This document shows positions 1 through 21,294 of a stretch of DNA of 21,720 nt, piece by piece; position 1 is the stretch's first letter; each line of letters starts with the position of its first letter. Source of the stretch: Neoechinorhynchus agilis (taxonomy: Eukaryota; Animalia; Acanthocephala). The DNA is taken from contig JBMGUZ010000048.1 of NCBI GenBank assembly GCA_051530055.1, positions 1 to 21,720 on the forward strand. The letters run 5' to 3'. A program made the position numbers and the translations under genes. The notes below the pieces were generated by a model, which worked only from the letters and a program-made list of their open reading frames with translations, made no database searches and was not told where the DNA came from.

Positions 1-167
1 AATTATTCTCGAAAGTGAACTTATTCCTGTTTTGGTGCATTTTCTGCGAAAATTATTTGCTGCCGGCTGTGTTGAGCGATTAAAGAAAACGAATTTAGTC
101 TCCTACAAAATATTAGCGCAGCACAAAAACGTAAAAGTAGATTTTTCACGGAGATGAGAGTTCAAGA

Positions 168-238
168 GCATTGGTGGTTGAATGGTAGAATTCGTGATTG
201 CTACGCTAAAGACCCGGGTTCGGTATCCGTCCAATGCA
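168..238 (+). pseudogene. Degenerate tRNA-Gly(GCC)-derived sequence
   Basis: gcattggtggttgaatggtagaattc...gacccgggttcggtatccgtccaatgca aligns without gaps over 71 nt to the canonical metazoan tRNA-Gly-GCC (GCATTGGTGGTTCAGTGGTAGAATTC...GGCCCGGGTTCGATTCCCGGCCAATGCA, recalled from memory). The anticodon position reads GCT and the anticodon stem cannot pair. Confidence 0.8.
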
Positions 239-651
239 ACATTCGATCGATCTTAAATCTGTCGCCAGGAAACTTTACTTTTTCAATGGATTTTTTCGAC
301 TTTTAAACAACAAATGCGAAAAAATCTGGCCGCTTGGGCAATTATGAATCAGAACGAACAATGGACGCCAATATCTTACCTCTAATTTAATTTTCCTTCA
401 GAGATTTATATACTTTTTAGCATTGTGAATGCGTTTTTTAAATGAATGATTTGTAGTTTGTTTCCAATATTAAACTTTTCCCAGAGTTCTTGTGTTTTTT
501 AATAATACTTTTTTCGCATGAATCTAAACGCTGCGTACAATTTCCGAGTGGATACTAAAATAATTCGATATTTGAGAAATGCGCTTCGTTTTGATCGATT
601 TGTCTTTGAATTATTCTTTTGCTCGATTAGGTAGCAATGATGAGCGAAATA

Positions 652-657
652 TTTATT
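652..657 (-). terminator. Candidate AATAAA polyadenylation signal of FoxO-like copy A
   Basis: AATAAA on the minus strand ~80 nt after the stop codon, at the same position in all three copies. Confidence 0.5.
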
Positions 658-735
658 GTATGCTTAAAAGCCGAGTTTCGGTTTGTTTGAATGCGCTCTT
701 TTCGGTTGAGCATAACGATTGCCGTCCGATAACCT

Positions 736-3329
736 TTATCCAATTGGATTGAATTGATTGTTATTTTGTTGGTTAATGTTGTAGTTTTGGAGAGCGATCA
801 TCGCTTGCTCCTGCGAGATTAGAACTCCTGAGTTTAAGGCTTTTATTTCGCCGCATCTTTGACAAAGCGGCACAAGGAGAAACTGTGACATTTCGTGGGA
901 GTGATTCGGATCAACGCAAATATTGACGTGACAAACCATTTGACTAGCCTGATTGCTATTGTTGACTCGTTGATTGGTTTGAATACTTAATCCGTTTTGG
1001 AGAATCGCTGTATTGCCATATCTGAAATTTCCATCATTTCCTCCAATGTTAATGTTTTCGACGGGTGCGCTATTCTGCTGTGTTCCGAAATCAATGATCA
1101 GGTGGTTGTTCGCCAAGTCCAAATTTTTATTTGGAAAATATCCATTGGGTGCCATATTCCCAAAACCCAACTGTTCGTTTCGGTTTCCAATATTGGTACT
1201 GTTATTGTGGATTCCTTGGACTAAATTAGCTGCGTTCGCGTTTTCTACTCGATGGTTCTCCGCCAAGTTCAAATTTTGATTTGGAAAATATCCATTGGGC
1301 GCCATATTCCCAAAACCCAACTGTTCATTTCGGTTTCCAATATTGGTACTGTTATTATAGATTCCTTGGACTAAATAAGTTGCGTTCGAATTTTCTACTC
1401 GGGGGTTGTTCGCCAAGTTCAAATTTTGATTTGGAAAATATCCATTGGGTGCCATATTCCCAAAACCCAACTGTTCGTTTCGGTTTCCAACATTGGTACT
1501 GTTATTACAGATTCCTTGGACAAAATAGGCTGCGTTCGTGTTTTCTACTCGGTGGTTGTTCGCCAAGTTCAAATTTTGATTTGGAAAATATCCATTGGGC
1601 GCCATATTCCCAAAACCCAACTGTTCATTTCGATTTCCAATATTGGTACTGTTATTGTGGATTCCTTGGACTAAATTAGTTGCATTCGTATTTTCCACTC
1701 GGTGGTTGTTCGCCAAGTTCAAATTTTGATTTGGAAAATATCCATTGGGTGCCATATTCCCAAAACCCAACTGTTCATTTCCAATATTGGTACTGTTATT
1801 ATAGATTCCTTGGACTAAATTAGTTGCATTCGTATTTTCTACTCGGTGGTTGTTCGCCAAGTTCAAATTTTGATTTGGAAAATATCCATTGGGTGCCATA
1901 TCCCCAAAATCCAACTGTTCATTTCGATTTCCAATATTGGTACTGTTATTATAGATTCCTTGGACTAAATTAGCTGCGTTCGAATTTTCTACTCGGTGGT
2001 TGTTCGCGAAGTTCAAATTTTGATTTGGAAAATATCCATTGGGTGCCATATTCCCAAAACCCAACTGTTCGTTTCGGTTTCCAATATTGGTACTGTTATT
2101 GTAGATTCCTTGGACTAAATTAGTTGCATTCGTATTTTCTACTCGGTGGTTGTTCGCCAAGTTCAAATTTTGATTTGGAAAATATCCATTGGGTGCCATA
2201 TTCCCAAAACCCAACTGTTCGTTTCCAATATTGGTACTGTTATTGTGGATTCCTTGGACTAAATCAGCTGCGTTCGTATTTGCCACTCGGTGGTTGTTCG
2301 CCAAGTTCAAATTTTGATTTGGTAGATATCCATTGGGTGCCATATTCCCAAAACCCAACTGTTCATTTCGATTTCCAATATTGGTACTGTTATTATAGAT
2401 TCCTTGGACTAAATAAGTTGCATTCGTATTTTCCACTCGGTGGTTGTTCGCCAAGTCCAAATTTTGATTTGGAAAATATCCATTGGGTGCCATATTCGCA
2501 AAACCCAACTGTTCATTTCGATTTCCAATATTGGTACTGTTATTACAGATTCCTTGGACTAAATTAGCTGCGTTCGTATTTGCCACTCGGGGGTTGTTCG
2601 CCAAGTTCAAATTTTGATTTGGAAAATATCCATTGGGTGCCATATTCCCAAAACCCAACTGTTCGTTTCGATTTCCAATATTGGTACTGTTATTATAGAT
2701 TCCTTGGACAAAATAGGCTGCGTTCGTATTTTCCACCGTCCTGTTCATTTCATGGGGTGCTGCATGAACGAAATCTCTCGGTTCAAATGAGGACCGGGCC
2801 CGTTTGTTCCGATCATCGTTCATTGATCCAGGATTTGTACGTTTTCGGCCCGGTCTTTTGGGTTCTGGCTCCCTGTAATTCGGGTCAATGGTCCACCAAG
2901 ATCTTCTCGGATTATCGTCGTCCTCGATTTTAACGAATTTTTTGTTTATCGTAAGGCAATGTCGAATTGCGTTCTAAATACAATATCGGCGGCCATAAAA
3001 ATTTTAAGTTATGGGAAACTTACCTTCCAAGGCCTACTTTCGACGGGGCCCATTCGATAATTAAAATATAAATTGTTGTCCTCCAGCCATGAATAAATTT
3101 CACGTAGTTTCAGCCTCTTTTCGGGGCTGCTATAGATTGCTTTTGCGATCAAATCCGCGTAGGTGTACGGCCCCCACGCATTTATTCGTCGACCCTTTGC
3201 ACCAATAAGAATAATCGATTCTTCACTGGTTTCTGATGAATTTCCTTCGATCCGTTGATTTCTATTTCCTTGATACGATTCATCACCATCATCATGAGAA
3301 TGAGTAGAGCTTTTCCTGGAATCAGACAT
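736..3329 (-). CDS. foxO: Divergent FoxO-type forkhead transcription factor with 11 Asn-rich repeats, copy A; join(complement 3024-3329, 736-2973), 847 aa
   Basis: Exon 1 encodes RRINAWGPYTYADLIAKAIYSSPEKRLKLREIYSWL...YFNYRMGPVESRPWK. A GTAAGT...TATTTAG intron (2974-3023) follows. Exon 2 starts NAIRHCLTINKKFVKIEDDDNPRRSWWTIDP and runs in frame into ORF 736-2823. The 11-residue YF..WK spacing and the intron position are FoxO-typical. The symbol is family-level, not an orthology claim. Confidence 0.92.
1099..2736 (-). repeat. Coding tandem repeat, 11 units (nine of 150 nt, two of 144 nt)
   Basis: Unit ~VENTNATNLVQGIYNNSTNIGNRNEQLGFGNMAPNGYFPNQNLNLANNHR, counted from the translation. The two short units lack RN. 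Confidence 0.97.
2974..3023 (-). other. 50-nt phase-0 intron in forkhead domain, copy A
   Basis: GTAAGT donor and TATTTAG acceptor; removal restores the forkhead helix 3 sequence WK-NAIRH. Confidence 0.92.
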
Positions 3330-3488
3330 CTAAATTGGAAAAGTCAGATTAAAAATGAATTTAATTCATATTAATAAAGAAGGAATTCGACTTAAATGTT
3401 CTTCGAATTGATCGCTATAATCGACCGAAATCTTGGAGACGATTGAAAGATTCTATGTTCGAACTTTCTTGATTGAATGAGTGAATCG

Positions 3489-3496
3489 TATTTATA
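3489..3496 (-). promoter_or_regulatory. Candidate TATA box (TATAAATA), copy A
   Basis: Perfect TATAAATA ~165 nt upstream of the ATG, conserved in all three copies. Confidence 0.5.
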
Positions 3497-3836
3497 CTCC
3501 CCAATTCGAAAACATCAACTTTGTTTTTTTGATTGAACTTTGTACCTAAGCGAATTTGTTTTGGATGTCATCTCGTTTTGCTTTTCTATGATTTGTTGTT
3601 AAGAGCTTCGATTTTTAAAAATTAGATCACTGATATTCTTTATTGTATCTTATTTTTGGCATTTGGAGAGCATTGATGGCTTCTTTTCGGTATAATTCTA
3701 ATTTTATCATCTCTCAAATTAGTATTTTCCTAAACGGTCGACTTTGCTAAATTGAATGATCAATAAGTTATCATTAATTTTTGAGCCAGTTCTCATCAAC
3801 CTTCAAACTGGTAATCGCCTACCAACTTGTGGAATC

Positions 3837-5374
3837 TTTTTTTCTATTTTTTCTGGAGAATTTAATAATGAAATTAACTTTTATTACCAGAACCTGAATG
3901 TAACATACACGCTCACTTGAAGATATAAACATAATTATTCGCCGTCCTCGATTGTCGCCCGAATGCTCGCAATGTTGCCTCTCAACCCGGCGGTGCTGAT
4001 ATTTTATAACCAGGTTTTGACCTGACCTTGGATCGCCGGTCATAACCTGAAGGCGTCGCTTCACATCCTTCAGAAGTTGAGGAGCCTCGCAATCAAGAGA
4101 TCCGTAGGTACATTGGCTAAATCGAGGTATTTCGCCGTTTTCCGTCATTCCGCAGCGTTCGCTGCACCTCCAGCTTGAACCACCCAGAACTTTGGATTGC
4201 TGGTTGCGAGTGTATCGACACAGTGGCGTCCCAGAGGAGGCATTTACCCTCCTGCCATGGAACAGAGGTGGGCTGGTTCCAAAATATTGGGGTATTTGAG
4301 GCGTAACAAGTGCCCGGCTCAGCACCATGTTAATTTCAGAATGTCTTGCGAATCTACCGGCTGATTTTCAACAGATGAGACCATGGCATCCCGACGAATC
4401 CACATTTGCACCGCAGCGGCAACGGTGGGGGATGGCACATCGGTAGTCCCAGTCTCATTGAACTCCGGCCCGTTTTGCCTCGTGGGATAGTACCCTCGGA
4501 TGCCAGCGGGACCGTGGATTCTCTACTGGAGACTGCCAACAACCTGGCACGGGCAACGTCGTCGTTTGAGTCTGATAAGAGAGAGCTTTGAACACTTGCG
4601 GCGAGATGCCCACGCAGATTGTTTTTGGCGACCGGAGTTGGTCAGTGTACACCACTCACTGATTCCCTCTTCAAAATGCCTATCAAGACGATACGCATCT
4701 TTCAAAATGCGTTGAACTGCGCTTCCCCCATAGGAGCCTAAAGATGCGGGCAGGAATATGTCTGCTGTTTTCCGGATACCCAGCCCGCCAGAAGATACAG
4801 GCAAAGAAGCTTGTCGCCATGCCTCTTCTGACAGCTGGACATTTAAAACTTGCTCGAGACAGTCCTTCAATCTGTTATCTAGATTGCCACGCTGAACCTT
4901 GTGCTTGAAAAACGGCGAGGAACTTCAAGATGAAGAGGGTATCCTTTATCAAGGACAGAACCTCGTGTGATCCAAGCTCACAGACCTTATCGCAAAGCAC
5001 CGATAATTTCTTTAGAAGGCTGTTAATTTCGTTTTCTACATTCCCATCAAATGCGCAACTGCCCAAAAGCTTAAGCCGGTCTAAATCGACCATTTCTATC
5101 CCGACTTTCAAAGTCACGCATTATTACGCCTTTTGCAGGGTCCTTCTCTATATTACAGAATAGAATTTCGCATTTTTCTGTGTTCAATTCAAAATGCCCA
5201 GCTTCCTTGCCTCTATCAAGAACTACCTGGGGATCGCCTCCCAGCGCAGCATCGTCCACATAAAAGGCGTTGAATTCCGCATCAAGATAATGCGCAAATT
5301 CGTTCACTGTGAGCGCGAAACCAATGAGTATTTCTGTTGAACGCCGCTTTCGGATGGAATGATTTGATCGTTTA
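3837..5374 (-). mobile_element. Decayed 5'-truncated CRE-like non-LTR retrotransposon (RT + RLE remnant), copy A
   Basis: Mirror image of 10923-12459, with the same motifs and essentially the same stops and frameshifts. Confidence 0.85.
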
Positions 5375-6696
5375 CAAGAGAAGTTGCAGCTCCGTACGAA
5401 TTGAGTCCAGATGACAATAAGATTTAATTGTTATTTCTAAACCTGAAACAAACGTTTTTTGAGCAATGCTCTTAGTGTGAATAATTCATTCTTTTTTGAA
5501 AAGGTCCTAAGCGTTTAAGAGATTTTAAAATAAGTATCTTACGCCTCATGGAAACCTTGATAAACGCGTACAAGATTATGCCGAAATATCGGATTTTAAA
5601 ATAAAATTATTTTAATTTCTTCGCCAGAGACTACAAATAACGAGTGCGGAGTATCGGAGGTTAGGGAACGAGTTAAAACGACTAAAAATACCTCTGAAGG
5701 ATCTGTTTCGAAAAATAGACCCTTAAAACCGTCTGATGAAATCGAATTTAGTACCGAAGATCTCTTTTTTGTCGGACTAAAAGTATTATCGATAAAATAT
5801 ACGCCGTCGCCAACGATGCAGTGAATACGATAATATTTTATTGCAATGATTTGAAGAGAAATTTCAAGAAATGATGATCGAAACAATAATTTGGATGCAA
5901 TTTTTGAAAGCATTCAAAGGAAATCCGGATAACAAAATCGAACGAAGGAAGCGATAAATAATTTAAGAAGATCGAGGAGAAAACGAGCTGTTGTCATTAT
6001 GAGCAGCAATAGCCCTAAAATGTTAACATTGGAAGCAACAAATCAAAGAAAGGCATTGAATAAAACAGAAACGCAAAATGGCCTCTTAGAAAGATCATTT
6101 GATTTTTATTCCTTTAGCAAAAGCTAATGAGGAATCTTTGGTTGATGTTAGTGAGTTTTGATCGGCCTTCGCAACTTAATGACGATAAGACAAACCTAAA
6201 GTCCCAGGCTGAGAATTTCTGTTAGAAACATCACCAATGCCACTGGATTTTCTCGGCAATACAATCTTTCAGCTGTACCGATCACCGCATCTCCAAGACC
6301 TTTGTCCAGAGGTAAAACATTTTGGCTTACAAATACAAAAACAATAGAAAAATTAGTTGTGTTTTCATTAAAGGGAGTCAAATTAAACGGTTTTTGTTAC
6401 TCTGAAGTGTATTAGAGGCGTCAAGCGAGCAAACGGAACATTGATGAGCTTTTGATAAAGGAATTAACAATAACCGACCACTATAAAGGCGGTTCGGATT
6501 GATTCTTAGGTCTAAAACGATCCTCCAAGTAGCCTTAAGAGAAATTATTGACATTATTTTCCGAACGCCATGAAAGTGTAAAAGGATTCGGCAAGTAGCA
6601 AACTTGTACTTCGTGGACTCTTTTGTTGTTGTTTTTATTGCTCAATGAAATTGATTTCCACACACGACCACATCAAATTCGGATACACCCATATCG

Positions 6697-7656
6697 CTAA
6701 GACTCTTCATCCGGAATAACACTTTCGATTCTTAGTTTAACGTCTTTTGAAAGACTGGTTGGAAAATCAATTTGGAACTTAACTATGAGGTCTCCTCTCG
6801 AGTTTGGTGCTGTCGAACGGGGCATCCCGTCACCCTTTAGGATTTTGACAGTATTGGGACTAATGATTTCGTCTTCACTTATCGGGATACGTCTTTTCTT
6901 TGAGTCGATAGTAGAAACGACCACTTCGTTCAAGCATAGCGCCTGTAAGAGTGACAAACGAACACTATGAACCAAATCATCTCCAATCCTACTGAATGCT
7001 GGATCAGGTTCCTCGACTACAACGAACACCATATCCAACGGATCACCATACGAACTAATTAAATCACCTTCGCCAACGAATCTGATCTTCGTCCCAGCGC
7101 ACCAACCAGGTTTGATGTTTATGATGAAAATTTTAGGTTCAATCATAAAGGATCTTGATGATCGATCGTACACTTTCCTCTGAGCTACAATTCTCTTCGT
7201 GCCACCTTTTAAAAGTTCCTTTAAACTCAATTTCAATTCATGATACAAAGGTTCTTTTTGCCGAACCGTCTCTTGATCGGCTTTTGGATCACAATCTGTA
7301 TGCTGTGACCTTAGCCATTCAGTAATACGCTCAATTCCACAAAATCTCGACTCACTACTATCGCTAAAAAGGCTCAAATCGGCATCTAGTTTGTCAAAGA
7401 AACGCCTAAACGTCTTTCTTGGACTTACAATTGAATTGTAGCTGTAATTTCGTTCTCGATCATATGCCGATCGACGCGTTGGATCAATCAGAACTTCGTA
7501 GGCTTCAGCAAGCTGCTTGAACCTTTCTTCGGCATCGCCAGAATTACACTTGTCCGGATGATACTTCAGAGCCAAAGTTCGATATGCTCGTCTAATCTCG
7601 GCGTCCGTCGAATCAGACGATATCCCCAATATTTGGTAGTATCGCTTCCTAGTCAT
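6697..7656 (-). CDS. Class B DnaJ/Hsp40 co-chaperone (DNAJB1/4/5/13-like), intronless, 319 aa
   Basis: N-terminal J domain YYQILGISSDSTDAEIRRAYRTLALKYHPDK with intact HPD. No CxxCxGxG zinc finger. DnaJ C-terminal motifs present: LSLKELLKGGTK, IKPGWCAGTKIRFVGEGD, GDGMP...RGDLIVKFQIDFP. True ATG start. Confidence 0.93.
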   Translation of the reverse strand: MTRKRYYQILGISSDSTDAEIRRAYRTLALKYHPDKCNSGDAEERFKQLAEAYEVLIDPTRRSAYDRERNYSYNSIVSPRKTFRRFFDKLDADLSLFSDSSESRFCGIERITEWLRSQHTDCDPKADQETVRQKEPLYHELKLSLKELLKGGTKRIVAQRKVYDRSSRSFMIEPKIFIINIKPGWCAGTKIRFVGEGDLISSYGDPLDMVFVVVEEPDPAFSRIGDDLVHSVRLSLLQALCLNEVVVSTIDSKKRRIPISEDEIISPNTVKILKGDGMPRSTAPNSRGDLIVKFQIDFPTSLSKDVKLRIESVIPDEES

Positions 7657-7835
7657 TCAGTACGCGACGTTTTCAGGCTTCCGCAGCGTACGTCTCCGGC
7701 TTGATAGTATCGTCAGTGGGCAGGGGCGAGTTTGATGATGTGATATTAAAATCAGATTGACGTTGAATTGCGATTGAACGGTTCAATGTAAGAATGGCGT
7801 TAAAAAATCAATCGAAGAATGCCCTTTTTTGTGAG

Positions 7836-7843
7836 GTAAACAA
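7836..7843. promoter_or_regulatory. GTAAACAA (FoxO/DAF-16 binding element consensus) 180 nt upstream of the DnaJ ATG
   Basis: Exact match to the reverse complement of TTGTTTAC. It is a single site, so a chance occurrence is possible. Confidence 0.3.
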
Positions 7844-7915
7844 AAAGGTTTTTGTCCATGCAAACGTCTATGGAAACTGAGGACGAATGTATGCGTTTTA
7901 GGCTAGGATTTAGAA

Positions 7916-10766
7916 CTCGAGATACTCAAACAAAAATAAAATTTTATACGTTTTTGAGTATTTTTGAAGCGATCATCCAGTACACAGCTGATTTCCCGAA
8001 TTAATCGGTGAAGGACTAATTGAACTCGGGAGTTTTTTGACTGTGATTTTAAAAAGAAGACGGAATCTATATTTTAGACAAAACCTACGGATCCCATGTG
8101 CTCGAGATACTATAACAAAAATAAGATTTTATACGTTTTTGTGTATTTTTGAAGCGATCATCCAGTACACAGCTGATTTCCCGAATTAATCGGTGAAGGA
8201 CTAATTGAACTCGGGAGTTTTTTGACTGTGATTTTAAAAAGAAGACGGAATCTATATTTTAGACAAAACCTACGGATTCCTATTGCTCGAGATACTCAAA
8301 CAAAAATAAGATTTTATACGTTTTTGAGTATTTTTGAAGCGATCATCCAGTACACAGCTGATTTCCCGAATCAATCGGTGAAGGACTAATTGAACTCGGG
8401 AGTTTTTTTACTGTGATTTTAAAAAGAAGACGGAATCTATATTTTAGACAAAACCTACGGATCCCATGTGCTCGAGATACTGAAACAAAAATAAGATTTT
8501 ATACGTTTTTGAGTATTTTTGAAGGGATCATCCAGTACACAGCTGATTTCCCGAATTAATCGGTGAAGGACTAATTGAACTCGGGAGTTTTTTTGACTGT
8601 GATTTTAAAAAGAAGACGGAATCTATATTTTAGACAACACATTCTGATTCCTATTGCTCGAGATACTCAAACAAAAATAAGATTTTATACGTTTTTGAGT
8701 ATTTTTGAAGTGATCATCCAGTACACAGCTGATTTCCCGAATCAATCGGTGAAGGACTAATTGAACTCGGGAGTTTTTTTACTGTGATTTTAAAAAGAAG
8801 ACGGAATCTATATTTTAGACAAAACCTACGGATTCCATTGCTCGAGATACTGAAACAAAAATAAGATTTTATACGTTTTTGAGTGTTTTGATCATCCAGT
8901 ACACAGCTGATTTCCCGAATTAATCGGTGAAGGACTAATTGAACTCGGGAGTTTTTTTGACTGTGATTTTAAAAAGAAGACGGAATCTATATTTTAGACA
9001 ACACATTCTGATTCCTATTGCTCGAGATACTGAAACAAAAATAAGATTTTATACGTTTTTGAGTATTTTTGAAGCGATCATCCAGTACACAGCTGATTTC
9101 CCGAATCAATCGGTGAAGGACTAATTGAACTCGGGAGTTTTTTTGACTGTGATTTTAAAAAGAAGACGGAATCTATATTCTAGAAAAAACCTACGGATCC
9201 CATGTGCTCGAGATACTGAAACAAAAATAAGATTTTATACGTTTTTGAGTATTTTTGAAAGGATTATCCAGTACACAGCTGATTTCCCGAATTAATCGGT
9301 GAAGGACTAATTGAACTCGGGAGTTTTTTTGACTGTGATTTTAAAAAGAAGACGGAATCTATATTTTAGAAAAAACCTACGGATTCCATGTGCTCGAGAT
9401 ACTGAAACAAAAATAAGATTTTATACGTTTTTGAGTATTTTTGAAAGGATTATCCAGTACACAGCTGATTTCCCGAATTAATCGGTGAAGGACTAATTGA
9501 ACTCGGGAGTTTTTTTGACTGTGATTTTAAAAAGAAGACGGAATCTATATTTTAGACAACACATTCTGATTCCTATTGCTCGAGATACTCAAACAAAAAT
9601 AAGATTTTATACGTTTTTGAGTATTTTTGAAGCGATCATCCAGTACACAGCTGATTTCCCGAATTAATCGGTGAAGGACTAATTGAACTCGGGAGTTTTT
9701 TACTGTGATTTTAAAAAGAAGACGGAATCTATATTTTAGACAAAACCTACGGATTCCATTGCTCGAGATACTCAAACAAAAATAAGATTTTATACGTTTT
9801 TGAGTGTTCTTGAAGTGATCATCCAGTACACAGCTGATTTCCCGAATCAATCGGTGAAGGACTAATTGAACTCGGGAGTTTTTTTGACTGTGATTTTAAA
9901 AAGAAGACGGAATCTATATTTTAGACAAAACCTACGGATTCCTATTGCTCGAGATACTCAAACAAAAATAAGATTTTATACGTTTTTGAGTGTTCTTGAA
10001 GTGATCATCCAGTACACAGCTGATTTCCCGAATCAATCGGTGAAGGACTAATTGAACTCGGGAGTTTTTTTGACTGTGATTTTAAAAAGAAGACGGAATC
10101 TATATTTTAGACAAAACCTACGGATTCCTATTGCTCGAGATACTGAAACAAAAATAAGATTTTATACGTTTTTGAGTATTTTTGAAGCGATCATCCAGTA
10201 CACAGCTGATTTCCCGAATTAATCGGTGAAGGACTAATTGATCTCGGGAGTTTTTTTGACTGTGATTTTTAAAAGAAGACGGAATCTATATTTTAGACAA
10301 AACCTACGGATTCCATGTTTTCGAGATACTAAAACAAAAATAAGATTTTATACGTTTTTGTGTATTTTTGAAGCGATCATTCAGTACACAGCTGATTTCC
10401 CGAATTAATCGGTGAAGGACAAATTGAACTCGGGAGTTTTTTTGACTGTGATAAAAAAAGACGAAATCTATATTTGATACAAAACCTACGGATTCCATGT
10501 GCTCGAGATACTCAAACAAAAATAAAATTTTATACGTTTTTGAGTATTTTTTAAGTGATCATCCAGTACACGGCGGATTTCCCGAATTAATCGGTGAAGG
10601 ACTAATTGAACTCGGGAGTTTTTTCGACTGTGATTTTAAAAAGAAGACGGAATCAATATTCTAGAAAAAACCTACGGATCCCATGTGCTCGAGATACTGA
10701 AACAAAAATAAGATTTTATACGTTTTTGAGTATTTTTGAAAGGATTATCCAGTACACGGCGGATTT
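7916..10766. repeat. Tandem satellite array, ~15.4 monomers of ~185-186 bp
   Basis: The anchor ttgaactcggg (one copy reads ttgatctcggg) recurs at 8020, 8205, 8390, 8575, 8761, 8939, 9125, 9311, 9497, 9683, 9866, 10052, 10238, 10424 and 10606. Most monomers contain ctcgag and cagctg. There are no unique spacers. Confidence 0.97.
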
Positions 10767-10870
10767 TCCTTTGCTATTTATGAAGATACAGTAAAATATG
10801 TGATAAAGATGGGGCTTTTAAGATGAGCTTTAAAAAATCAGAATGCCAATGATGGTTCACGTCCGCACGT

Positions 10871-10907
10871 CTTCCACGAAATGTCACAGTTTCTCCTTGC
10901 GCCGTTT
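10871..10907 (+). other. Isolated 37-nt fragment of the FoxO-like 3' coding region
   Basis: cttccacgaaatgtcacagtttctccttgcgccgttt matches 14807-14843 at 35/37 positions. Confidence 0.85.
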
Positions 10908-10922
10908 AATATTAGAAACTAT

Positions 10923-12459
10923 TAAACGATCAAATCATTCCATCCGAAAGAGGCGTTCAACAGAAATACTCATTGGTTTCGCGCTCACAGTGAACGAATT
11001 TGCGCATTATCTTGATTCGGAATTCAACGCCTTTTATGTGGACGATGCTGCGCTGGGAGGCGATCCCCAGGTAGTTCTTGATAGAGGCAAGGAAGCTGGG
11101 CATTTTGAATTGAACACAGAAAAATGCGAAATTCTATTCTGTAATATAGAGAAGGACCCTGCAAAAGGCGTAATAATGCGTGACTTTGAAAGTCGGGATA
11201 GAAATGGTCGATTTAGACCGGCTTAAGCTTTTGGGCAGTTGCGCATTTGATGGGAATGTAGAAAACGAAATTAACAGCCTTCTAAAGAAATTATCGGTGC
11301 TTTGCGATAAGGTCTGTGAGCTTGGATCACACGAGGTTCTGTCCTTGATAAAGGATACCCTCTTCATCTTGAAGTTCCTCGCCGTTTTTCAAGCACAAGG
11401 TTCAGCGTGGCAATCTAGATAACAGATTGAAGGACTGTCTCGAGCAAGTTTTAAATGTCCAGCTGTCAGAAGAGGCATGGCGACAAGCTTCTTTGCCTGT
11501 ATCTTCTGGCGGGCTGGGTATCCGGAAAACAGCAGACATATTCCTGCCCGCATCTTTAGGCTCCTATGGGGGAAGCGCAGTTCAACGCATTTTGAAAGAT
11601 GCGTATCGTCTTGATAGGCATTTTGAAGAGGGAATCAGTGAGTGGTGTACACTGACCAACTCCGGTCGCCAAAAACAATCTGCGTGGGCATCTCGCCGCA
11701 AGTGTTCAAAGCTCTCTCTTATCAGACTCAAACGACGACGTTGCCCGTGCCAGGTTGTTGGCAGTCTCCAGTAGAGAATCCACGGTCCCGCTGGCATCCG
11801 AGGGTACTATCCCACGAGGCAAAACGGGCCGGAGTTCAATGAGACTGGGACTACCGATGTGTCATCCCCAGCGTTGCCGCTGCGGTGCAAATGTGGATTC
11901 GTCGGGATGCCATGGTCTCATCTGTTGAAAATCAGCCGGTAGATTCGCAAGACATTCTGAAATTAACATGGTGCTGAGCCGGGCACTTGTTACGCCTCAA
12001 ATACCCCAATATTTTGGAACCAGCCCACCTCTGTTCCATGGCAGGAGGGTAAATGCCTCCTCTGGGACGCCACTGTGTCGATACACTCGCAACCAGCAAT
12101 CCAAAGTTCTGGGTGGTTCAAGCTGGAGGTGCAGCGAACGCTGCGGAATGACGGAAAACGGCGAAATACCTCGATTTAGCCAATGTACCTACGGATCTCT
12201 TGATTGCGAGGCTCCTCAACTTCTGAAGGATGTGAAGCGACGCCTTCAGGTTATAACCGGCGATCCAAGGTCAGGTCAAAACCTGGTTATAAAATATCAG
12301 CACCGCCGGGTTGAGAGGCAACATTGCGAGCATTCGGGCGACAATCGAGGACGGCGAATAATTATGTTTATATCTTCAAGTGAGCGTGTATGTTACATTC
12401 AGGTTCTGGTAATAAAAGTTAATTTCATTATTAAATTCTCCAGAAAAAATAGAAAAAAA
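10923..12459 (+). mobile_element. Decayed 5'-truncated CRE-like non-LTR retrotransposon (RT + RLE remnant), copy B
   Basis: Motifs in order, across frameshifts: IPSERGVQQ, FYVDDAALGGD (RT YxDD), ELNTEKCEI, LKLLGS, QASLPVSSGGLGIR, the zinc-knuckle CGANVDSSGCHGLIC*KSAGRFARHSEIN, PWQEGKCLLWDAT (RLE endonuclease region), AANAAE*RKTAKY and RGNIASI. AATAAA and an A-rich tail follow. The clade is assigned from recalled motifs. Confidence 0.85.
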
Positions 12460-12799
12460 GATTCGACAAGTTGGTAGGCGATTACCAGTTTGAAGGTTGA
12501 TGAGAACTGGCTAAAAAATTAATGATAACTTATTGATCATTCAATTTAGCAAAGTCGACCGTTTAGGAAAATACTAATTTGAGAGATGATAAAATTAGAA
12601 TTATACCGAAAAGAAGCCATCAATGCTCGCCAAATGCCAAAAATAAGATACAATAAAGAATATCAGTGATCTAATTTTTAAAAATCGAAGCTCTTAACAA
12701 CAAATCATAGAAAAGCAAAACGAGATGACATCCAAAACAAATTCGCTTAGGTACAAAGTTCAATCAAAAAAACAAAGTTGATGTTTTCGAATTGGGGAG

Positions 12800-12807
12800 T
12801 ATAAATA
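12800..12807 (+). promoter_or_regulatory. Candidate TATA box (TATAAATA), copy B
   Basis: Conserved position upstream of the ATG in all three copies. Confidence 0.5.
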
Positions 12808-12966
12808 CGATTCACTCATTCAATCAAGAAAGTTCGAACATAGAATCTTTCAATCGTCTCCAAGATTTCGGTCGATTATAGCGATCAATTCGAAGAACAT
12901 TTAAGTCGAATTCCTTCTTTATTAATATGAATTAAATTCATTTTTAATCTGACTTTTCCAATTTAG

Positions 12967-14972
12967 ATGTCTGATTCCAGGAAAAGCTCTACTCATTCTC
13001 ATGATGATGGTGATGAATCGTATCAAGGAAATAGAAATCAACGGATCGAAGGAAATTCATCAGAAACCAGTGAAGAATCGATTATTCTTATTGGTGCAAA
13101 GGGTCGACGAATAAATGCGTGGGGGCCGTACACCTACGCGGATTTGATCGCAAAAGCAATCCAAAGCAGCCCCGAAAAGAGGCTGAAACTACGTGAAATT
13201 TATTCATGGCTGGAGGACAACAATTTATATTTTAATTATCGAATGGGCCCCGTCGAAAGTAGGCCTTGGAAGGTAAGTTTCCCATAACTTAAAATTTTTA
13301 TGGCCGCCGATATTGTATTTAGAACGCAATTCGACATTGCCTTACGATAAACAAAAAATTCGTTAAAATCGAGGACGACGATAATCCGAGAAGATCTTGG
13401 TGGACCATTGACCCGAATTACAGGGAGCCAGAACCCAAAAGACCGGGCCGAAAACGTACAAATCCTGGATCAATGAACGATGATCGGAACAAACGGGCCC
13501 GGTCCTCATTTGAACCGAGAGATTTCGTTCATGCAGCACCCCATGAAATGAACAGGACGGTGGAAAATTCGAACGCAGCTAATTTAGTCCAAGGAATCTG
13601 TAATAACAGTACCAATATTGGAAATCGAAATGAACAGTTGGGTTTTGGGAATATGGCACCCAATGGATATTTTCCAAATCAAACTTTGAACTTGGCGAAC
13701 AACCACCGAGTGGAAAATACGAATGCAACTAATTTAGTCCAAGGAATCCACAATAACAGTACCAATATTGGAAATCGAAACGAACAGTTGGGTTTTTGGA
13801 ATATGGCACCCAATGGATATTTTCCAAATCAAAATTTGAACTTGGCGAACAACCACCGAGTAGAAAACACGAACGCAGCCTATTTTGTCCAAGGAATCTG
13901 TAATAACAGTACCAATATTGGAAATCGAAATGAACAGTTGGGTTTTGGGAATATGGCACCCAATGGATATTTTCCAAATCAAAATTTGAACTTGGCGGAG
14001 AACCATCGAGTAGAAAACGCGAACGCAGCTAATTTAGTCCAAGGAATCCACAATAACAGTACCAATATTGGAAATCGAAATGAACAGTTGGGTTTTGGGA
14101 ATATGGCACCCAATGGATATTTTCCAAATCAAACTTTGAACTTGGCGAACAACCACCGAGTGGAAAATACGAATGCAACTAATTTAGTCCAAGGAATCCA
14201 CAATAACAGTACCAATATTGGAAATCGAAACGAACAGTTGGGTTTTGGGAATATGGCACCCAATGGATATCTACCAAATCAAAATTTGAACTTGGCGAAC
14301 AACCACCGAGTGGCAAATACGAACGCAGCTGATTTAGTCCAAGGAATCTACAATAACAGTACCAATATTGGAAATCGAAATGAACAGTTGGGTTTTGGGA
14401 ATATGGCACCCAATGGATATTTTCCAAATCAAAATTTGGACTTGGCGGAGAACCACCGAGTGGCAAATACGAACGCAACTTATTTAGTCCAAGGAATCGA
14501 CAATAACAGTACCAATATTGGAAATCGAAACGAACAGTTGGGGTTTGGGAATATGGCACCCAATGGATATTTTCCAAATCAAAATTTGAACTTGGCGAAC
14601 AACCACCGGATCATTGATTTCGGAACACAGCAGAATAGCGCACCCGTCGAAAACATTAACATTGGAGGAAATGATGGAAATTTCAGATATGGCAATACAG
14701 CGATTCTCCAAAACGGATTAAGTATTCAAGCTAATCAACGAGTCAACAATAGCAATCAGGCTAGTCAAATGGTTTGTCACGTCAATATTTGCGTTGATCC
14801 GAATCACTCCCACGAAATGTCACAGTTTCTCCTTGTGCCGTTTTGTCAAAGATGCGGCGAAATAAAAGCCTTAAACTCAGGAGTTCTAATCTCGCAGGAG
14901 CAAGCGATGATCGCTCTCCAAAACTACAACATTAACCAACAAAATAACAATCAATTCAATCCAATTGGATAA
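12967..14972 (+). CDS. foxO: Divergent FoxO-type forkhead transcription factor with 7 Asn-rich repeats, copy B; join(12967-13272, 13323-14972), 651 aa
   Basis: Exon 1 ends RPWK at 13272. The intron 13273-13322 runs GTAAGT...TATTTAG. Exon 2 begins aac gca att cga cat (NAIRH) and reaches the ATG at 13473 after exactly 50 codons with no stop. Confidence 0.92.
13273..13322 (+). other. 50-nt phase-0 intron in forkhead domain, copy B
   Basis: Canonical donor and acceptor; splicing restores the forkhead domain. Confidence 0.92.
13560..14609 (+). repeat. Coding tandem repeat, 7 units of 150 nt
   Basis: Seven 50-aa units counted in the translation. Confidence 0.97.
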
Positions 14973-15050
14973 AGGTTATCGGACGGCAATCGTTATGCTC
15001 AACCGAAAAGAGCGCATTCAAACAAACCGAAACTCAGCTTTTAAGCATAC

Positions 15051-15056
15051 AATAAA
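15051..15056 (+). terminator. Candidate AATAAA polyadenylation signal, copy B
   Basis: ~80 nt after the stop, conserved across copies. Confidence 0.5.
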
Positions 15057-15469
15057 TATTTCGTTCATCATTGCAACCCAATCGAGCAAAACAATAATTC
15101 AAAAACAAATCGATCAAAACGAAGAGCATTTCTCAAATATCGAATTATTTTAGTATCCACTCGGAAATTGTACGCAGCGTTTAGATTCATGCGAAAAAAG
15201 TATTATTAAAAAACACAAGAACTCTGGGAAAAGTTTAATATTGGAAACAAACTACAAATCATTCATTTAAAAAACGCATTCACAATGCTAAAAAGTATAT
15301 AAATCTCTGAAGGAAAATTAAATTAGAGGTAAGATATTAGCGTCCATTGTTCGTTCTGATTCATAATTGTTCAAGCGGCCAGATTTTTTCGCATTTGTTG
15401 TTTAAAAGTCGAAAAAATCCATTGAAAAAGTAAAGTTTCCTGGCGACAGATTTAAGATCGATCGAATGT

Positions 15470-15540
15470 TGCATTGGACGGATACCGAACCCGGGTCTTT
15501 AGCGTAGCAATCACGAATTCTACCATTCAACCACCAATGC
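15470..15540 (-). pseudogene. Degenerate tRNA-Gly(GCC)-derived sequence (mirror copy)
   Basis: Reverse complement of 168-238. Confidence 0.8.
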
Positions 15541-15773
15541 TCTTGAACTCTCATCTCCGTGAAAAATCTACTTTTACGTTTTTGTGCTGCGCTAATATTT
15601 TGTAGGAGACTAAATTCGTTTTCTTTAATCGCTCAACACAGCCGGCAGCAAATAATTTTCGCAGAAAATGCACCAAAACAGGAATAAGTTCACTTTCGAG
15701 AATAATTGGGATTAGAGCAACCGTTTACTTACAAATCTCTTTAGAAATCATTCTCATAAGATTATTTCTCAAA

Positions 15774-17396
15774 TTACAATCTAATCTTTTTGTTTTTCTC
15801 TTTATCATTCTCCAAAGCTTCACGATGACGCTTTCTATTAGTCGCGTTCAATTCATTTGTACGTTCAGGATTCTCAGCAATCCGCTGCTCTGCTCCTTCT
15901 TCATTGCCGTTAAGGATTTCGACGACGGTTTCTCCGCGCTCCACATTCCCGAAAAGAGACGAATATGCCGATTGCAACTGAGTTGGATTCGAACTCGTTG
16001 ACTGCAATGGAATCCCCTCCGATGCCATGATGGGCATCAATGTTTTTTCGACAAAATCAATAGCTTTTTTAAGCGTAATGGCTCTCAGCGGTCGTCCACG
16101 TTGAAATTCTTTTACGATAACAATCGATTTGTAAAACATTCTTCGGTCTTTACCTGATAAAAATATCTTGAGAAGATATTTTACGACGGATAAAAACTTA
16201 CAATGAGCATGTTGCTTCCGAACTTCTCTTAAGAAAATCTTTATCGTTGGAATCATAGAACCCAATTCCTGCTCAGCCTGTGCTCTGCTCATTCCCAGAA
16301 TTTCTATAAGAGCGTTAAACCGGATTTTTTGTCCTAAAATCTTACCTTCTTCATTCAAAATATTATTTGGTTGAAGAGTTGGTTCCATGTAGACCGGATC
16401 TTGAGATTGATTAAATGCAGCGTTTGAATTTGTAAATCTTATCGCCGATTCTTGGAGATGATTACGGCCATATTCGGAAAAGTTTGATTCAACTTTTAGC
16501 GGTTGGGAAATTTCGGGATTAAAAAACTGTGTTTGTTGCTCGACATTTCTTTGAGTGTCAAATACACCCACAGGATGGAGTTGTTGCCGTTGACCGGTGA
16601 AATCAATCGGCTGATCACTGTACATCGACATATTTGATTGATTGAGTGGTCGAGACTGATTAGGTGCGTAATCCACTTCATATTGATTCAATTGATGGAT
16701 CGGATGCTGTTGACTAATTGGGTTATAGCGATTCGGCTGTCTTGCTTGATATAATCGCTGACTTTGGAGCGTTGGATTTAGTATTCTCGGTGATTGCCAG
16801 ACTTGGTCCGATCTTTGAGGTTGATTTGGCGGAAATGTCGGCTCAAATTGAGTGCATTGGCCGATCTGTTGGGTTTGATTGTAAAAGAACGAACTTTCAT
16901 ATTGATTTGATTGGTCGATCGAATGCTGTTGATTCGTTGTGTGATAGTTTTGCATGCCATGTTCGTTTCGTTGGCATTCGAACATTGGGCCTTGCTGTTC
17001 AAATTGATTAAATTGACCAATTGATTGGTCTGATTGTGTAGCGTTCGGCTGCATTTGGTTACTTAATTGTTGGTGTGGTTCATAGTAGTCGGTCGTTGTA
17101 TGTCTCATTTCTGGTCCAGTTGCTCTTCGATTCGCCCATAAATACCTCGACTGATTTACCATTTCATTTAATAAATCCAACACTGATTTATAGTACTGAG
17201 AGAGATTGCGAGATTGGGTATATAAATCCTCTTCGGTACACTTCAGGGATTCGCCGTGTGGACTTTTACACAGCTCCATAATATTTTGTCTATAATAAAA
17301 CCGATCGGCATTGTGAAGATATCGCGATAAAAGACTACTTACATCGTTTTGGTAACATAAAGACGATTCTCGTAAGCTATTTCCATTTGAATTCAC
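15774..17396 (-). CDS. Uncharacterised Gln/Asn-rich protein, up to 540 aa; start uncertain
   Basis: A 1.6-kb open frame in AT-rich DNA, with a Q-rich middle and a basic C-terminus (RKRHR...KEKNKKIRL). The listed start is GTG; the first in-frame ATG is at 17279 (501 aa), so an upstream exon is possible. I recognise no family. Confidence 0.75.
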   Translation of the reverse strand: MNSNGNSLRESSLCYQNDVSSLLSRYLHNADRFYYRQNIMELCKSPHGESLKCTEEDLYTQSRNLSQYYKSVLDLLNEMVNQSRYLWANRRATGPEMRHTTTDYYEPHQQLSNQMQPNATQSDQSIGQFNQFEQQGPMFECQRNEHGMQNYHTTNQQHSIDQSNQYESSFFYNQTQQIGQCTQFEPTFPPNQPQRSDQVWQSPRILNPTLQSQRLYQARQPNRYNPISQQHPIHQLNQYEVDYAPNQSRPLNQSNMSMYSDQPIDFTGQRQQLHPVGVFDTQRNVEQQTQFFNPEISQPLKVESNFSEYGRNHLQESAIRFTNSNAAFNQSQDPVYMEPTLQPNNILNEEGKILGQKIRFNALIEILGMSRAQAEQELGSMIPTIKIFLREVRKQHAHCKFLSVVKYLLKIFLSGKDRRMFYKSIVIVKEFQRGRPLRAITLKKAIDFVEKTLMPIMASEGIPLQSTSSNPTQLQSAYSSLFGNVERGETVVEILNGNEEGAEQRIAENPERTNELNATNRKRHREALENDKEKNKKIRL

Positions 17397-18609
17397 TTTG
17401 TAGATCGTTGAGTTGTAAGCGATGATTTTTGTAAAAACATTGAATATTTCCTATTCTTACCATTCCGATAGAACCACAAATATTGGCAATTACATAATTA
17501 TTGTTGCCATCTTTGTTTAAATTTAAAACAAATAACAAGGAAGCAAGTCTTTATATTTGCGTATTTTTATTTGTGCATAAATTCCTTTATTTACTCATTG
17601 AAACATTTGGAGATCAATGCTTTAAACATTCTTGCACAAACAAACGCTATATTTTTTGGATGTACTGCTCCAAATACTGAGCTTGATTTTTTTATCAAAT
17701 GAATCAAGATAACGTTTATGGATTTTATGTTGCAATATCACTGATGAAGTGCGAATCGACTAGGATTTTAGATGTATTGAAAATGAGTTCTTGGAGTAAA
17801 AACAATTTCGTGACAGTTGAGTTGAAGAATTTCAGATGAATTTCTCTTATTTACTTAGGTCAAGAAAGTTAAAGGAAAGTAAAAAGGAAGCGAATGCTGC
17901 CACAAATTGTCAACCAACGAAGTATTTTCCTTTGTTGCCACAACTAATTTTTTACTTTTCGTCTCATTCAAATGGTCTTTGAAAGTATCGTGAATTTATG
18001 TCTAAACTTTATTGTCAATAGAAAAACGTAGAAATCAATTCTTTAGATTAAAAACGCTCTCATTTTATTTCACTAGGAATATAACGATCAACCTTAGAAG
18101 TCTCCGAATAAGTTTATCTGCTTTTAAAAAGGGTTGAAAAATGAAATTCGCCAATAATTTCAATCAGTCGGGAGTTTCTGGGAAATGCGGCAAATAATTC
18201 CCTACCAAGACTTATTCACAAAAATCTTAAATGGCAAAAAACAATTTAATTCTGTATTAAATCCAATTAATCTTTTCAAATTATAGTTTCATAAAAAAAT
18301 CAAAATTCAAAAAAAAATATTATCAATGGTTTAGGTGTCCAACATTGCAGCTGGATTTAATCATCGCTTCGGAAATATGCCGATGATAACCAGAAATGTC
18401 TTAAAAAAACGAGCAATTTCAAATCGCATTTGCGAGAAAAAAAAAGAATCAATCCCCCTAAACAATGAAATTTTCCCACGTTTCTTAAACTGGTTTTTAT
18501 ATCTTTATCGGGCCTAATAAAATTACTTCAATTTTATGCCAATATAAAAACATGAATAATTCAATCTTGAAACAAGGTAAAGATTAAGGCGACTTGGAGA
18601 AGGGTAAAA

Positions 18610-19115
18610 AATAATGTCTATATAGCAGAATTTTTTTTTATTATCTCATTGTAAAAGGGTTTTATCTTCTCCTATAGATATTTTTTAATAAAACATCGAA
18701 GAGATTGCAACATTTATAAATCTTAAATATTGATAAATCCGATTTTTTTTCGGTTGAACGCAAAGCTGCAAAATTCTTAAATTCCAATAATTAATTTTTA
18801 CAAATAAAAAAGCACCCGAAAAATCTGCCGGTAAATCGAATTGATTACAAAATTAATCTTTATAATTTCGATACGAACTTTAGAAATAAAAAACTCGTTG
18901 CACATTCACATCAGCATACTTTAAATTCTTTAAATTAAAAAATAATGTCTAAGTAACTGAAATCTTTTCTAATATCTCATTGAAAAAGGGGTTTATCTTC
19001 TTTTATAGAAATTTTTTAATAAAACATCGAAGAGATTGCAACATTTATAAATCTTAAACATCAATAAATCCGATTTTTTAGGTTGAACGCAAAGTAGAAA
19101 AATTCTAAAATTTCA
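18610..19115. repeat. Diverged direct repeat pair (~175 bp; 18610-18786 and 18941-19115)
   Basis: Shared blocks include aataatgtct, tatctcattg, ttttttaataaaacatcgaagagattgcaacatttataaatcttaaa and ggttgaacgcaaag. Confidence 0.8.
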
Positions 19116-19727
19116 AACCGGACTAAAAAAAGTCGAACTGCAAGAAGTTTCGCAAGACGCAACGAATAACCAAGAGTTTTTGAAGAACACGTAAATACAG
19201 CTGATCCTAATCAGGTGCCCGTAGAGCCCGGACGGTAGCCGAACTCGCGAGAACCACAGAAATTTTGTTGAGCAACAGTTCAAGAATTCTGATGTGCGGA
19301 TTGACCGAGCCGTTAGTGATTCGAGTGGGCAACTGGCTAAGCTAATTCACTTGTTCATCATGTACCAAAGAGTCCGGTATTGCCGCGATTGGTAAACCAA
19401 TAAAAAAAGTGCTCAAAAGGTTGATGAGAACTGGCTAAAAAATTAATTAATGATAACTTATTGATCATTCAATTTAGTAAAGTCGACCGTTTAGGAAAAT
19501 ACTAATTTGAGAGATGATAAAATTAGAATTATACCGCAAAGAAGATATCAATGCTCTCCAAATGCCAAAAATAAGATACAATAAAGAATATCAGTGATCA
19601 AATTTTTAAAAATCGAAGCTCTTAACAACAAATCATAGAAAAGCAAAACGAGATGACATCCAAAACAAATTCGCTTAGGTACAAAGTTCAATCAAAAAAA
19701 CAAAGTTGATGTTTTCGAATTGGGGAG

Positions 19728-19735
19728 TATAAATA
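19728..19735 (+). promoter_or_regulatory. Candidate TATA box (TATAAATA), copy C
   Basis: Same position as in copies A and B. Confidence 0.5.
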
Positions 19736-19894
19736 CGATTCACTCATTCAATCAAGAAAGTTCGAACATAGAATCTTTCAATCGTCTCCAAGATTTCGGT
19801 CGAATATAGCGATCAATTCGATGGACATTTAAGTCGAATTCCTTCTTTATTAATATGAATTAAATTCATTTTTAATCTGACTTTTCCAATTTAG

Positions 19895-21294
19895 ATGTCT
19901 GATTCCAGGAAAAGCTCTACTCATTCTCATGATGATGGTGATGAATCGTATCAAGGAAATAGAAATCAACGGATCGAAGGAAATTCATCAGAAACCAGTG
20001 AAGAATCGATTATTCTTATTGGTGCAAAGGGCCGACGAATAAATGCGTGGGGGCCGTACACCTACGCGGATTTGATCGCAAAAGCAATCTATAGCAGCCC
20101 CGAAAAGAGGCTGAAACTACGTGAAATTTATTCATGGCTGGAGGACAACAATTTATATTTTAATTTTCGAATGGGCCCCGTCGAAAGTAGGCCTTGGAAG
20201 GTAAGTTTCCCATAACTTAAAATTTTTACGGCCGCCGATATTGTATTTAGAACGCAATTCGACATTGCCTTACGATAAACAAAAAATTCGTTAAAATCGA
20301 GGACGACGATAATCCGAGAAGATCTTGGTGGACCATTGACCCGAATTACAGGGAGCCAGAACCCAAAAGACCGGGCCGAAAACGTACAAATCCTGGATCA
20401 ATGAACGATGATCGGAACAAACGGGCCCGGTCCTCATTTGAACCGAGAGATTTCGTTCATGCAGCACCCCATGAAATGAACAGGACGGTGGAAAATACGA
20501 ACGCAGCCTATTTTGTCCAAGGAATCTGTAATAACAGTACCAATATTGGAAATCGAAATGAACAGTTGGGTTTTGGGAATATGGCACCCAATGGATATTT
20601 TCCAAATCAAAATTTGAACTTGGCGAACAACCACCGAGTAGAAAACACGAACGCAGCTGCTTTAGTCCAAGGAATCTACAATAACAGTACCAATATTGGA
20701 AATCGAAATGAACAGTTGGGTTTTGGGAATATGGCGCCCAATGGATATTTTCCAAATCAAAATTTGGACTTGGCGAACAACCACCGAGTAGAAAACGCGA
20801 ACGCAACTAATTTAGTCCAAGGAATCTACAATAACAGTACCAATGTTGGAAACGAACAGTTGGGTTTTGGGAATATGGCACCCAATGGATATTTTCCAAA
20901 TCAAAATTTGAACTTGGCGAACAACCACCGGATCATTGATTTCGGAACACAGCAGAATAGCGCACCCGTCGAAAACATTAACATTGGAGGAAATGATGGA
21001 AATTTCAGATATGGCAATACAGCGATTCTCCAAAACGGATTAAGTATTCAAACCAATCAACGAGTCAACAATAGCAATCAGGCTAGTCAAATGGTTTGTC
21101 ACGTCAATATTTGCGTTGATCCGAATCACTCCCACGAAATGTCACAGTTTCTCCTTGTGCCGCTTTGTCAAAGATGCGGCGAAATAAAAGCCTTAAACTC
21201 AGGAGTTCTAATCTCGCAGGAGCAAGCGATGGTCGCTCTCCAAAACTACAACATTAACCAACAAAATAACAATCAATTCAATCCAATTGGATAA
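19895..21294 (+). CDS. foxO: Divergent FoxO-type forkhead transcription factor with 3 Asn-rich repeats, copy C; join(19895-20200, 20251-21294), 449 aa
   Basis: Same exon/intron structure as A and B, intron 20201-20250; exon 2 is in frame with ORF 20401-21294. Confidence 0.92.
20201..20250 (+). other. 50-nt phase-0 intron in forkhead domain, copy C
   Basis: gtaagt...gtatttag. Confidence 0.92.
20488..20931 (+). repeat. Coding tandem repeat, 3 units (150, 150, 144 nt)
   Basis: Counted from the translation; the last unit lacks RN. Confidence 0.97.

Follow-up and report, generated by a model that had tools for sequence, protein, structure and literature searches.

Three copies of a FoxO-type forkhead gene with a length-variable Asn-rich coding minisatellite in the acanthocephalan Neoechinorhynchus agilis

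We analysed an unplaced 21.7-kb contig of the thorny-headed worm Neoechinorhynchus agilis, an acanthocephalan; all 21,720 nucleotides (nt) of it are referred to here as the window. The window holds three intact two-exon copies of one gene, c1 on the minus strand and c2 and c3 on the plus strand, each encoding a forkhead domain of the FoxO type, an array of Asn-rich 50-residue modules and a conserved tail. We consider it likely that all three genes are functional and encode a FoxO-derived factor specific to this lineage, that the modules form an unstable coding minisatellite, and that the window is an alternative haplotype of a locus on the scaffold CM121341.1. The N. agilis assembly (46.2 Mb, 102 contigs) includes three scaffolds of chromosome scale and was produced with MaSuRCA from Oxford Nanopore Technologies (ONT) R9.4 and Illumina reads of DNA from a pool of ~50 worms, followed by purge_dups, and its gene models are BRAKER models with mRNA-Seq evidence (PMC12690905).

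Each gene appears in the genomic DNA as a 106-residue open reading frame (ORF) followed by a long Asn-rich one: 3329..3009 and 2823..736 on the minus strand (c1), 12967..13287 and 13473..14972 on the plus strand (c2; 106 and 499 residues), and 19895..20215 and 20401..21294 on the plus strand (c3). In all three copies a 50-nt GT-AG intron lies directly after the forkhead codons TGG AAG (Trp-Lys, or WK), and a TTTAG acceptor restores the frame; the unspliced frame meets a stop after four codons (VSFP*). The c2 intron (13273..13322, plus strand) runs from GTAAGT to TTTAG in phase 0, and its removal gives the junction ...SRPWK|NAIRHCLT.... The initial annotation of this DNA had joined the two c2 ORFs in the same way, and its coordinates proved accurate. 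Gene models deposited for the family use the identical splice site, and in the paralogues the intron has diverged in sequence but retained its length and its GT-AG ends.

After splicing, c2 (12967..14972, plus strand) encodes 651 residues. Exon 1 (12967..13272) contributes an acidic, Ser-rich N-terminus, helices 1 and 2 of the forkhead domain and a FoxO-type loop between helices 2 and 3, ending in ...RPWK. The first part of exon 2 (13323..13559) encodes the recognition helix NAIRHCLTI, the wings, a basic linker (KRPGRKRT...NKRAR) that is likely to be a nuclear localisation signal, and a spacer. This is followed by a coding minisatellite of seven 150-nt units at 13560..14609, with the 50-residue consensus VENTNAANLVQGIYNNSTNIGNRNEQLGFGNMAPNGYFPNQNLNLANNHR, and by a conserved tail of 120 residues plus the stop codon (14610..14972), which carries a C-x4-H...C-x2-C motif (NICVDPNHSHEMSQFLLVPFCQRCGEI...). 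c1 (736..3329, minus strand; 847 residues) has exon 1 at 3329..3024, the intron at 3023..2974 and exon 2 at 2973..736, the latter including an 11-unit array (2736..1099), the tail (1098..739) and the stop codon (738..736). c3 (19895..21294, plus strand; 449 residues) has exon 1 at 19895..20200, the intron at 20201..20250 and exon 2 at 20251..21294, with a three-unit array at 20488..20931 and the tail at 20932..21291. In Tandem Repeats Finder the period comes out at 150 nt, with copy numbers of 11.0, 7.0 and 3.0 for c1, c2 and c3 and a 92% match. If the arrays are set aside, 301 residues can be compared, and the proteins differ from one another at 1-5 of them, the paralogue-specific variants including Y66Q, Y91F and, in the tail, T41A, L78F and I101V; this is in agreement with the earlier description of three intact paralogues that differ mainly in unit number.

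A Pfam scan of the full protein (E cut-off 0.01) matched Forkhead (PF00250) at residues 54-137, with E=1.6e-22 and 79.8 bits against a cut-off of 27, and no other domain. AlphaFold gives the forkhead domain an H-S-H-H-S-S topology with a predicted local distance difference test (pLDDT) score of 80-91. The eleven best matches among PDB sequences are all FoxO-type (72-86 bits, E 7e-19 to 2e-23): FOXO1, FOXO4, FOXO3 and entry 2mbf, which carries no more specific name than 'Fork head domain containing protein'. The best scores of FOXO1/3/4 are 82-86 bits (E=2e-23); FOXP, FOXA, FOXC, FOXN, FOXM and FOXK structures in the PDB reach at most 56 bits, with E values of 3e-14 or weaker. The spacing between helices 2 and 3, YF-NYRMGPVESRP-WK, is 11 residues, corresponding to the FoxO-specific five-residue insertion, and the alignments to FOXO1 and FOXO4 have no gap across this loop. 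Among family members and the top matches of an exhaustive HMMER search, which covered 1.84 billion representatives, 135 of 162 proteins have the 11-residue YF..WK spacing. The named nearest non-self matches are FoxO proteins, from Bursaphelenchus (a nematode), Leptotrombidium (a mite), Hypsibius (a tardigrade), clupeid fish and a snail. When the forkhead domain alone was used in a word-seeded search for homologues, the yield was just eight candidates and one match, and the result was uninformative.

The position of the intron points to the same class. A phase-0 intron after WK is found in four N. agilis subfamilies (window-type, P0005, P0007 and P0162). Its status as the position typical of FoxO was judged from read-through gene calls that break off after WK: the FoxO-type calls P0006 and P0034, from Logan contigs, and P0009, from the nematode Bursaphelenchus okinawaensis, end at GWK|V, the Val codon being the GT donor. 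On this sequence evidence the assignment of the window domain to the FoxO class, made in the initial annotation from the loop spacing and the intron, holds. A secreted repeat antigen was considered as another identity for the protein and was rejected in view of the hydrophilic N-terminus without a signal peptide, the forkhead domain and the basic linker of nuclear type.

With FoxO/DAF-16 proteins (human FOXO1/3/4/6, C. elegans DAF-16, Drosophila dFOXO) the window proteins have in common the winged helix, the five-residue insertion, the intron after WK, a basic region after wing 2 and the Asn, Arg and His of helix 3. These last residues are Asn103, Arg106 and His107, which we take to correspond to the base-contacting residues of FOXO1. 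Helix 3 is otherwise divergent, reading NAIRHCLTI instead of the canonical NSIRHNLSL, so that site specificity may differ, and the NAWGN of FoxO is replaced by NAWGP. The window proteins also differ in that they contain no AKT/PKB motif RxRxxS/T; their basic region, GRKRTNPGS, offers only RKRT(148)NP, and P0005 retains RKRENS at this position. FOXO_KIX_bdg and FOXO-TAD gave no match either on the protein (E 0.01) or when tail and repeat were scanned alone (E up to 10). Regulation via the canonical AKT/14-3-3 route seems unlikely for a protein of this sequence. The C-terminal half is a further difference, as it consists of Asn-rich modules and a Cys/His tail for which no homologue was found outside N. 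agilis.

Full-length relatives of the window genes were found only in N. agilis, and we therefore regard the family as a lineage-specific offshoot, as had been proposed; the searches brought up no previously described orthologue that has the repeat. P0005 (349 residues) represents two identical genes on CM121342.1, inverted tail-to-tail around SURF2 (L002 10001-11100, plus strand, and 18778-19877, minus strand); the leucine-rich repeat genes flanking this pair are also duplicated. P0007 and P0155 (339 residues) are located on CM121343.1. P0005 and P0007/P0155 have one Asn-rich unit each and the same tail as the window genes. Four more genes, on CM121341.1, combine FoxO-type spacing with other, unrelated C-termini, and none of them has the full AKT motif set; their gene models are ACOME3_003413, ACOME3_000431, ACOME3_003067 and ACOME3_002151, and their proteins P0142, P0150, P0043 and P0162. 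The 46-Mb N. agilis genome contains at least seven FoxO-type subfamilies; the species was checked for only ~20 of the top 150 matches, and more such N. agilis genes may exist.

In a neighbour-joining tree, the window-type genes and P0005 form a clade with 100% bootstrap support (computed on a subset of the sequences). The family nests within the FoxO-spacing sequences, with weak support for the deep nodes and for the wider N. agilis group. There is also a separate FoxO-like gene, ACOME3_002151 (WKNSIRHNLSL, NEGSSKSSWW), which the tree places among ordinary FoxO sequences and which is the best candidate for a more canonical N. agilis FoxO. The window genes themselves are a divergent branch of this unusual radiation of FoxO genes. 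In fly and worm, FoxO is usually a single-copy gene, and the multi-copy N. agilis family differs from the usual invertebrate condition in this respect. Flatworm FoxO has also been reported to be single-copy (PMC7859237).

The window has a counterpart at 8.12-8.16 Mb of CM121341.1, where the gene order is the same: Fox (minus strand), DnaJ, Fox (plus), a Q/N-rich gene (minus) and Fox (plus). The two are 95-99% identical at the DNA level, and 99.1% identical over the unique stretch 15622-18699. In their 3' flanks, c1 corresponds to P0002 and c2 to P0001, in line with gene position, with six mismatches in each pair. The chromosomal arrays contain 4.0, 5.0 and 30.1 units, compared with 11, 7 and 3 in the window. 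With in-frame units of 150 nt and a copy number that differs between homologous loci, the array is a coding minisatellite, or variable number tandem repeat. Because the unit numbers differ at a syntenic locus and the DNA was pooled from ~50 worms, the number is polymorphic or unstable, or owes something to uncertainty in the assembly, and does not characterise the individual paralogues. Most probably, the window represents an alternative haplotype of the CM121341.1 locus that was left uncollapsed when the pooled worms were assembled, in which case window and chromosomal locus would be true alleles.

Several observations weigh against this interpretation or against a functional role of the genes. 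The spacer between the inverted Fox genes, with DnaJ and a satellite, has opposite orientations in the window and on the chromosome, which suggests a flip by recombination between the inverted-repeat arms described below, or a misassembly. About 700 bp before c3 are unmatched on the chromosome, and 5.8 kb of chromosomal sequence are missing from the window. The third chromosomal Fox gene, with the 30.1-unit array (L004 10597-14987, CM121341.1), has no C-terminal tail. Frameshifts are present in the chromosomal copies P0001 (in exon 1) and P0004, and many occur across the 30-unit array. The divergence of helix 3 noted above has to be counted here as well, as does the silence of the N. agilis genome paper and one supplementary file, which make no mention of forkhead or FoxO genes (PMC12690905). 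Given the structural differences beyond repeat number, the window could be a separate duplicated locus or be partly misassembled. As regards the 30-unit array, its indels are of 27 kinds, all of them deletions (many of 1 nt), with zero insertions; this looks like poorly polished ONT error, real decay being possible. The array probably represents a long allele for which the ONT consensus was left unpolished, or else an assembly join.

A genuine second locus, created by a recent segmental duplication and bringing the number of multi-repeat genes to six, would account for the flipped spacer, the unmatched segments and the presence of a tail in c3 where chromosomal gene 3 has none, and the contig did survive purge_dups. 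We nevertheless regard it as unlikely, given the shared gene order, the near-identity of the unique 3-kb stretch and the pairing of 3' flanks by position, together with the absence of unique flanks from the contig and the use of a pooled, outbred sample.

The initial annotation had read the three genes as a graded series from one locus, each paralogue having a fixed, selected number of units (11, 7 or 3) that sets the strength of activation or condensation. Near-identity of the three intact copies outside the arrays would suit such a series, as would the prion-like composition of the unit and the purifying selection acting on it (see below). The proposal fares badly at the chromosomal locus: the syntenic genes have 4, 5 and ~30 units, so the number does not track gene position, and the DNA came from ~50 worms. 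The units also appear to have been exchanged between genes. Those within one array differ from each other by 10-14 nt, no less than units taken from separate arrays do, and a unit usually has its nearest relative in another array. Divergence between the flanking sequences of the gene copies is only ~1%. This pattern fits old unit variants that have been reshuffled, added and removed through unequal exchange or conversion between copies. A fixed series is improbable.

The repeat unit is not new low-complexity filler. Its consensus and the one unit present in P0005 share 70% identity, roughly the same as for the forkhead domain, and the unit is recognisable in P0007. With one unit and one tail each in paralogues on two other chromosomes, sequence comparison shows both elements to be ancestral. 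Among 25 units, diversity at codon positions 1, 2 and 3 is 0.064, 0.029 and 0.093, that is, in the order 3 > 1 > 2. The pooled ratio of non-synonymous to synonymous substitution rates (dN/dS) between units is 0.32, with 0.38 in residues 1-14, which vary more, and 0.28 in residues 15-50; in the comparison with P0005, the forkhead domain has a ratio of 0.11, the tail 0.23 and the linker 0.53. These values indicate purifying selection on the forkhead domain, the module and the tail. The units of the window and of P0002 vary in length in one way only, by an in-frame loss of 6 nt (Arg-Asn), found in three units. The position-specific conservation of the unit suggests that it is a module bearing motifs and not a domain defined purely by composition. 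Pfam and PDB searches of the repeat gave nothing meaningful. An improbable explanation is that the arrays have no role in the protein and arose by neutral expansion in gene copies that are decaying or redundant, or as a tandem-repeat assembly artefact. It could draw on the frameshifts in P0001 and P0004, the 30-unit array without a tail and the scarcity of stop codons in several frames of the repeat, seen from minus-strand ORFs across the array. Against it stand the intactness of all three window copies, the codon-position pattern and dN/dS, the in-frame nature of the only length variant, the preservation of the unit as a single copy in P0005 and P0007, and the deletion-only indels of the chromosomal arrays, as in unpolished ONT sequence.

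Long ORFs also run over the arrays on the opposite strand (1013-2933, plus strand; 13729-14577, minus strand; 20291-20806, minus strand). We rejected them as genes, since the codon-position pattern fits the coding frame of the Fox genes; they are by-products of a repeat that has few stop codons.

The unit contains 28% Asn, 34% Asn plus Gln, 10% Gly, 8% aromatic, 8% charged and 18% aliphatic residues. Over the 546 residues of the c1 array the values are 34.1% Asn plus Gln and 8.4% charged, an N/Q-rich, low-charge composition sustained over at least 60 residues, and the description of the array as prion-like in composition was correct. AlphaFold assigns the c3 array a pLDDT of ~22, and everything outside the forkhead domain (in c3, and in the tail modelled alone) a pLDDT of 20-40; with only 5-6 sequences behind them, the models say nothing reliable about array and tail, which also detracts from the functional interpretation. 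Composition and low model confidence would be compatible with disorder and prion-like behaviour of the array.

The tail keeps the pattern C-x4-H-x12-C-x2-C, followed by a predicted helix, in all three subfamilies that have it. Searched alone, it has no Pfam or PDB relative. A search with full-length c3 found no relatives of repeat or tail outside N. agilis, and neither did a profile of unit plus tail; the 349 positions of that profile included the forkhead columns of P0005, so that forkhead matches dominated and weak ones may hide among them.

If the three genes are indeed functional copies of a FoxO-derived factor, the protein would enter the nucleus and bind forkhead/DAF-16-type sites as a sequence-specific factor. 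The Asn-rich modules would constitute a multivalent, probably disordered effector region, for activation or co-factor binding, and the tail might be a partner-binding or metal-binding element. The array may gain and lose units by unequal recombination or gene conversion among the direct and inverted gene copies.

Three groups of known proteins invite comparison. The zinc-finger array of PRDM9 is a hypervariable coding minisatellite in a DNA-binding protein. As in PRDM9, the array described here has long units (150 nt), resides in a gene of the transcription-factor type, varies in unit number between homologous copies and contains shuffled variants. It differs in that the repeated part is probably a disordered effector region and not the DNA-binding domain, and in being known from homologous loci, not from population alleles. 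Variable low-complexity repeats tune transcription regulators in yeast Ssn6/Cyc8 (polyQ), dog RUNX2 (Q/A) and clock genes. These resemble the array as length-variable, non-DNA-binding regions of a regulator that could act as a tuning knob, but they are homopolymer or dipeptide tracts, whereas the N. agilis array consists of a conserved 50-residue module. Finally, N/Q-rich prion-like domains of the yeast Sup35/Ure2/New1 type and the low-complexity domains of the FUS family are similar to the array in composition and in the low AlphaFold confidence it receives; they differ from the array, whose unit is conserved position by position (dN/dS 0.3, 18% aliphatic residues).

The sequences flanking the genes contain further elements. 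A TATAAATA (TATA) box at 12800..12807 (plus strand) precedes the c2 ATG by ~165 nt. It is also conserved ahead of c1, c3, P0004, P0005 and P0007 and is a putative promoter element. An AATAAA at 15051..15056 (plus strand), 78 nt after the c2 stop codon and at the equivalent position after c1 and c3, may serve as the polyadenylation signal. Directly before the ATG, an acceptor-like TTTAG is present in three subfamilies (window 12955-12966, and likewise in c1 and c3; L002 ~9990-10000; L006 ~5990-6000), which hints at an intron in the 5' untranslated region or at a trans-splice acceptor.

c1 and c2 lie in the arms of an inverted repeat of ~5 kb. The left arm (1..5374) holds c1, its upstream region and a retrotransposon remnant; its partner, the right arm (10923..15707), holds c2 and is 97-100% complementary to it. 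The remnant consists of GC-rich (~50%) ORF fragments duplicated in both arms (3819-5117, minus strand; 10843-12477, plus strand), one of them with the reverse-transcriptase-like sequence FYVDDAALGG. The fragments have no Pfam match at E<=0.01 and probably derive from a non-LTR (long terminal repeat) retrotransposon. The 5.5-kb spacer (5375-10922) includes an intronless DnaJ gene of 319 residues (6697-7656, minus strand; J domain and DnaJ_C) between the inverted Fox genes, and a non-coding 186-nt satellite (7916-10766) with 15.4 copies and a 94% match; the chromosome has 8.4 copies (L001 3827-5389). Between c2 and c3, a Q/N-rich ORF of 540 residues (15774-17396, minus strand) has no Pfam domain; it is annotated on the chromosome as a hypothetical protein of 471 residues, and the stretch is 99.1% identical.

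Protein searches returned members of the window family only as 'hypothetical protein' of N. agilis. c2 is represented in NCBI only by a partial model of 426 residues (ACOME3_010690), and the deposited N. agilis proteins returned by our searches included no model for the other two window genes. The gene models presented here thus improve on the public annotation. A further paper on syndermatans did not deal with transcription factors. The gene family is undescribed and poorly annotated, and its locus is palindromic and structurally unstable. The window family represents a new architecture within a known class of transcription factors.

Through FoxO, signals of nutrition and stress are linked to growth, lifespan and dormancy. 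N. agilis is a gutless parasite that has lost ~45% of the conserved metazoan genes, and a radiation of FoxO derivatives without AKT motifs would point to rewired nutrient and stress control in this animal. More tentatively, we can envisage a history in which FoxO radiated to at least seven subfamilies in a genome that, at 46 Mb, is among the smallest and most gene-depleted known from animals, one branch gained the module and the tail, the module became a minisatellite of 3 to ~30 units in palindromic gene pairs, and the population now carries an allelic valency series; this full scenario is possible, though doubtful. The variable array is a potentially useful population marker. The module, occurring in 1, 3, 4, 5, 7, 11 or ~30 copies, provides a ready-made series for relating the valency of an effector domain to the output of a transcription factor. 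If the allelic series is real, it would be a natural test bed for studying in vivo how the copy number of a disordered region affects activation or condensation.

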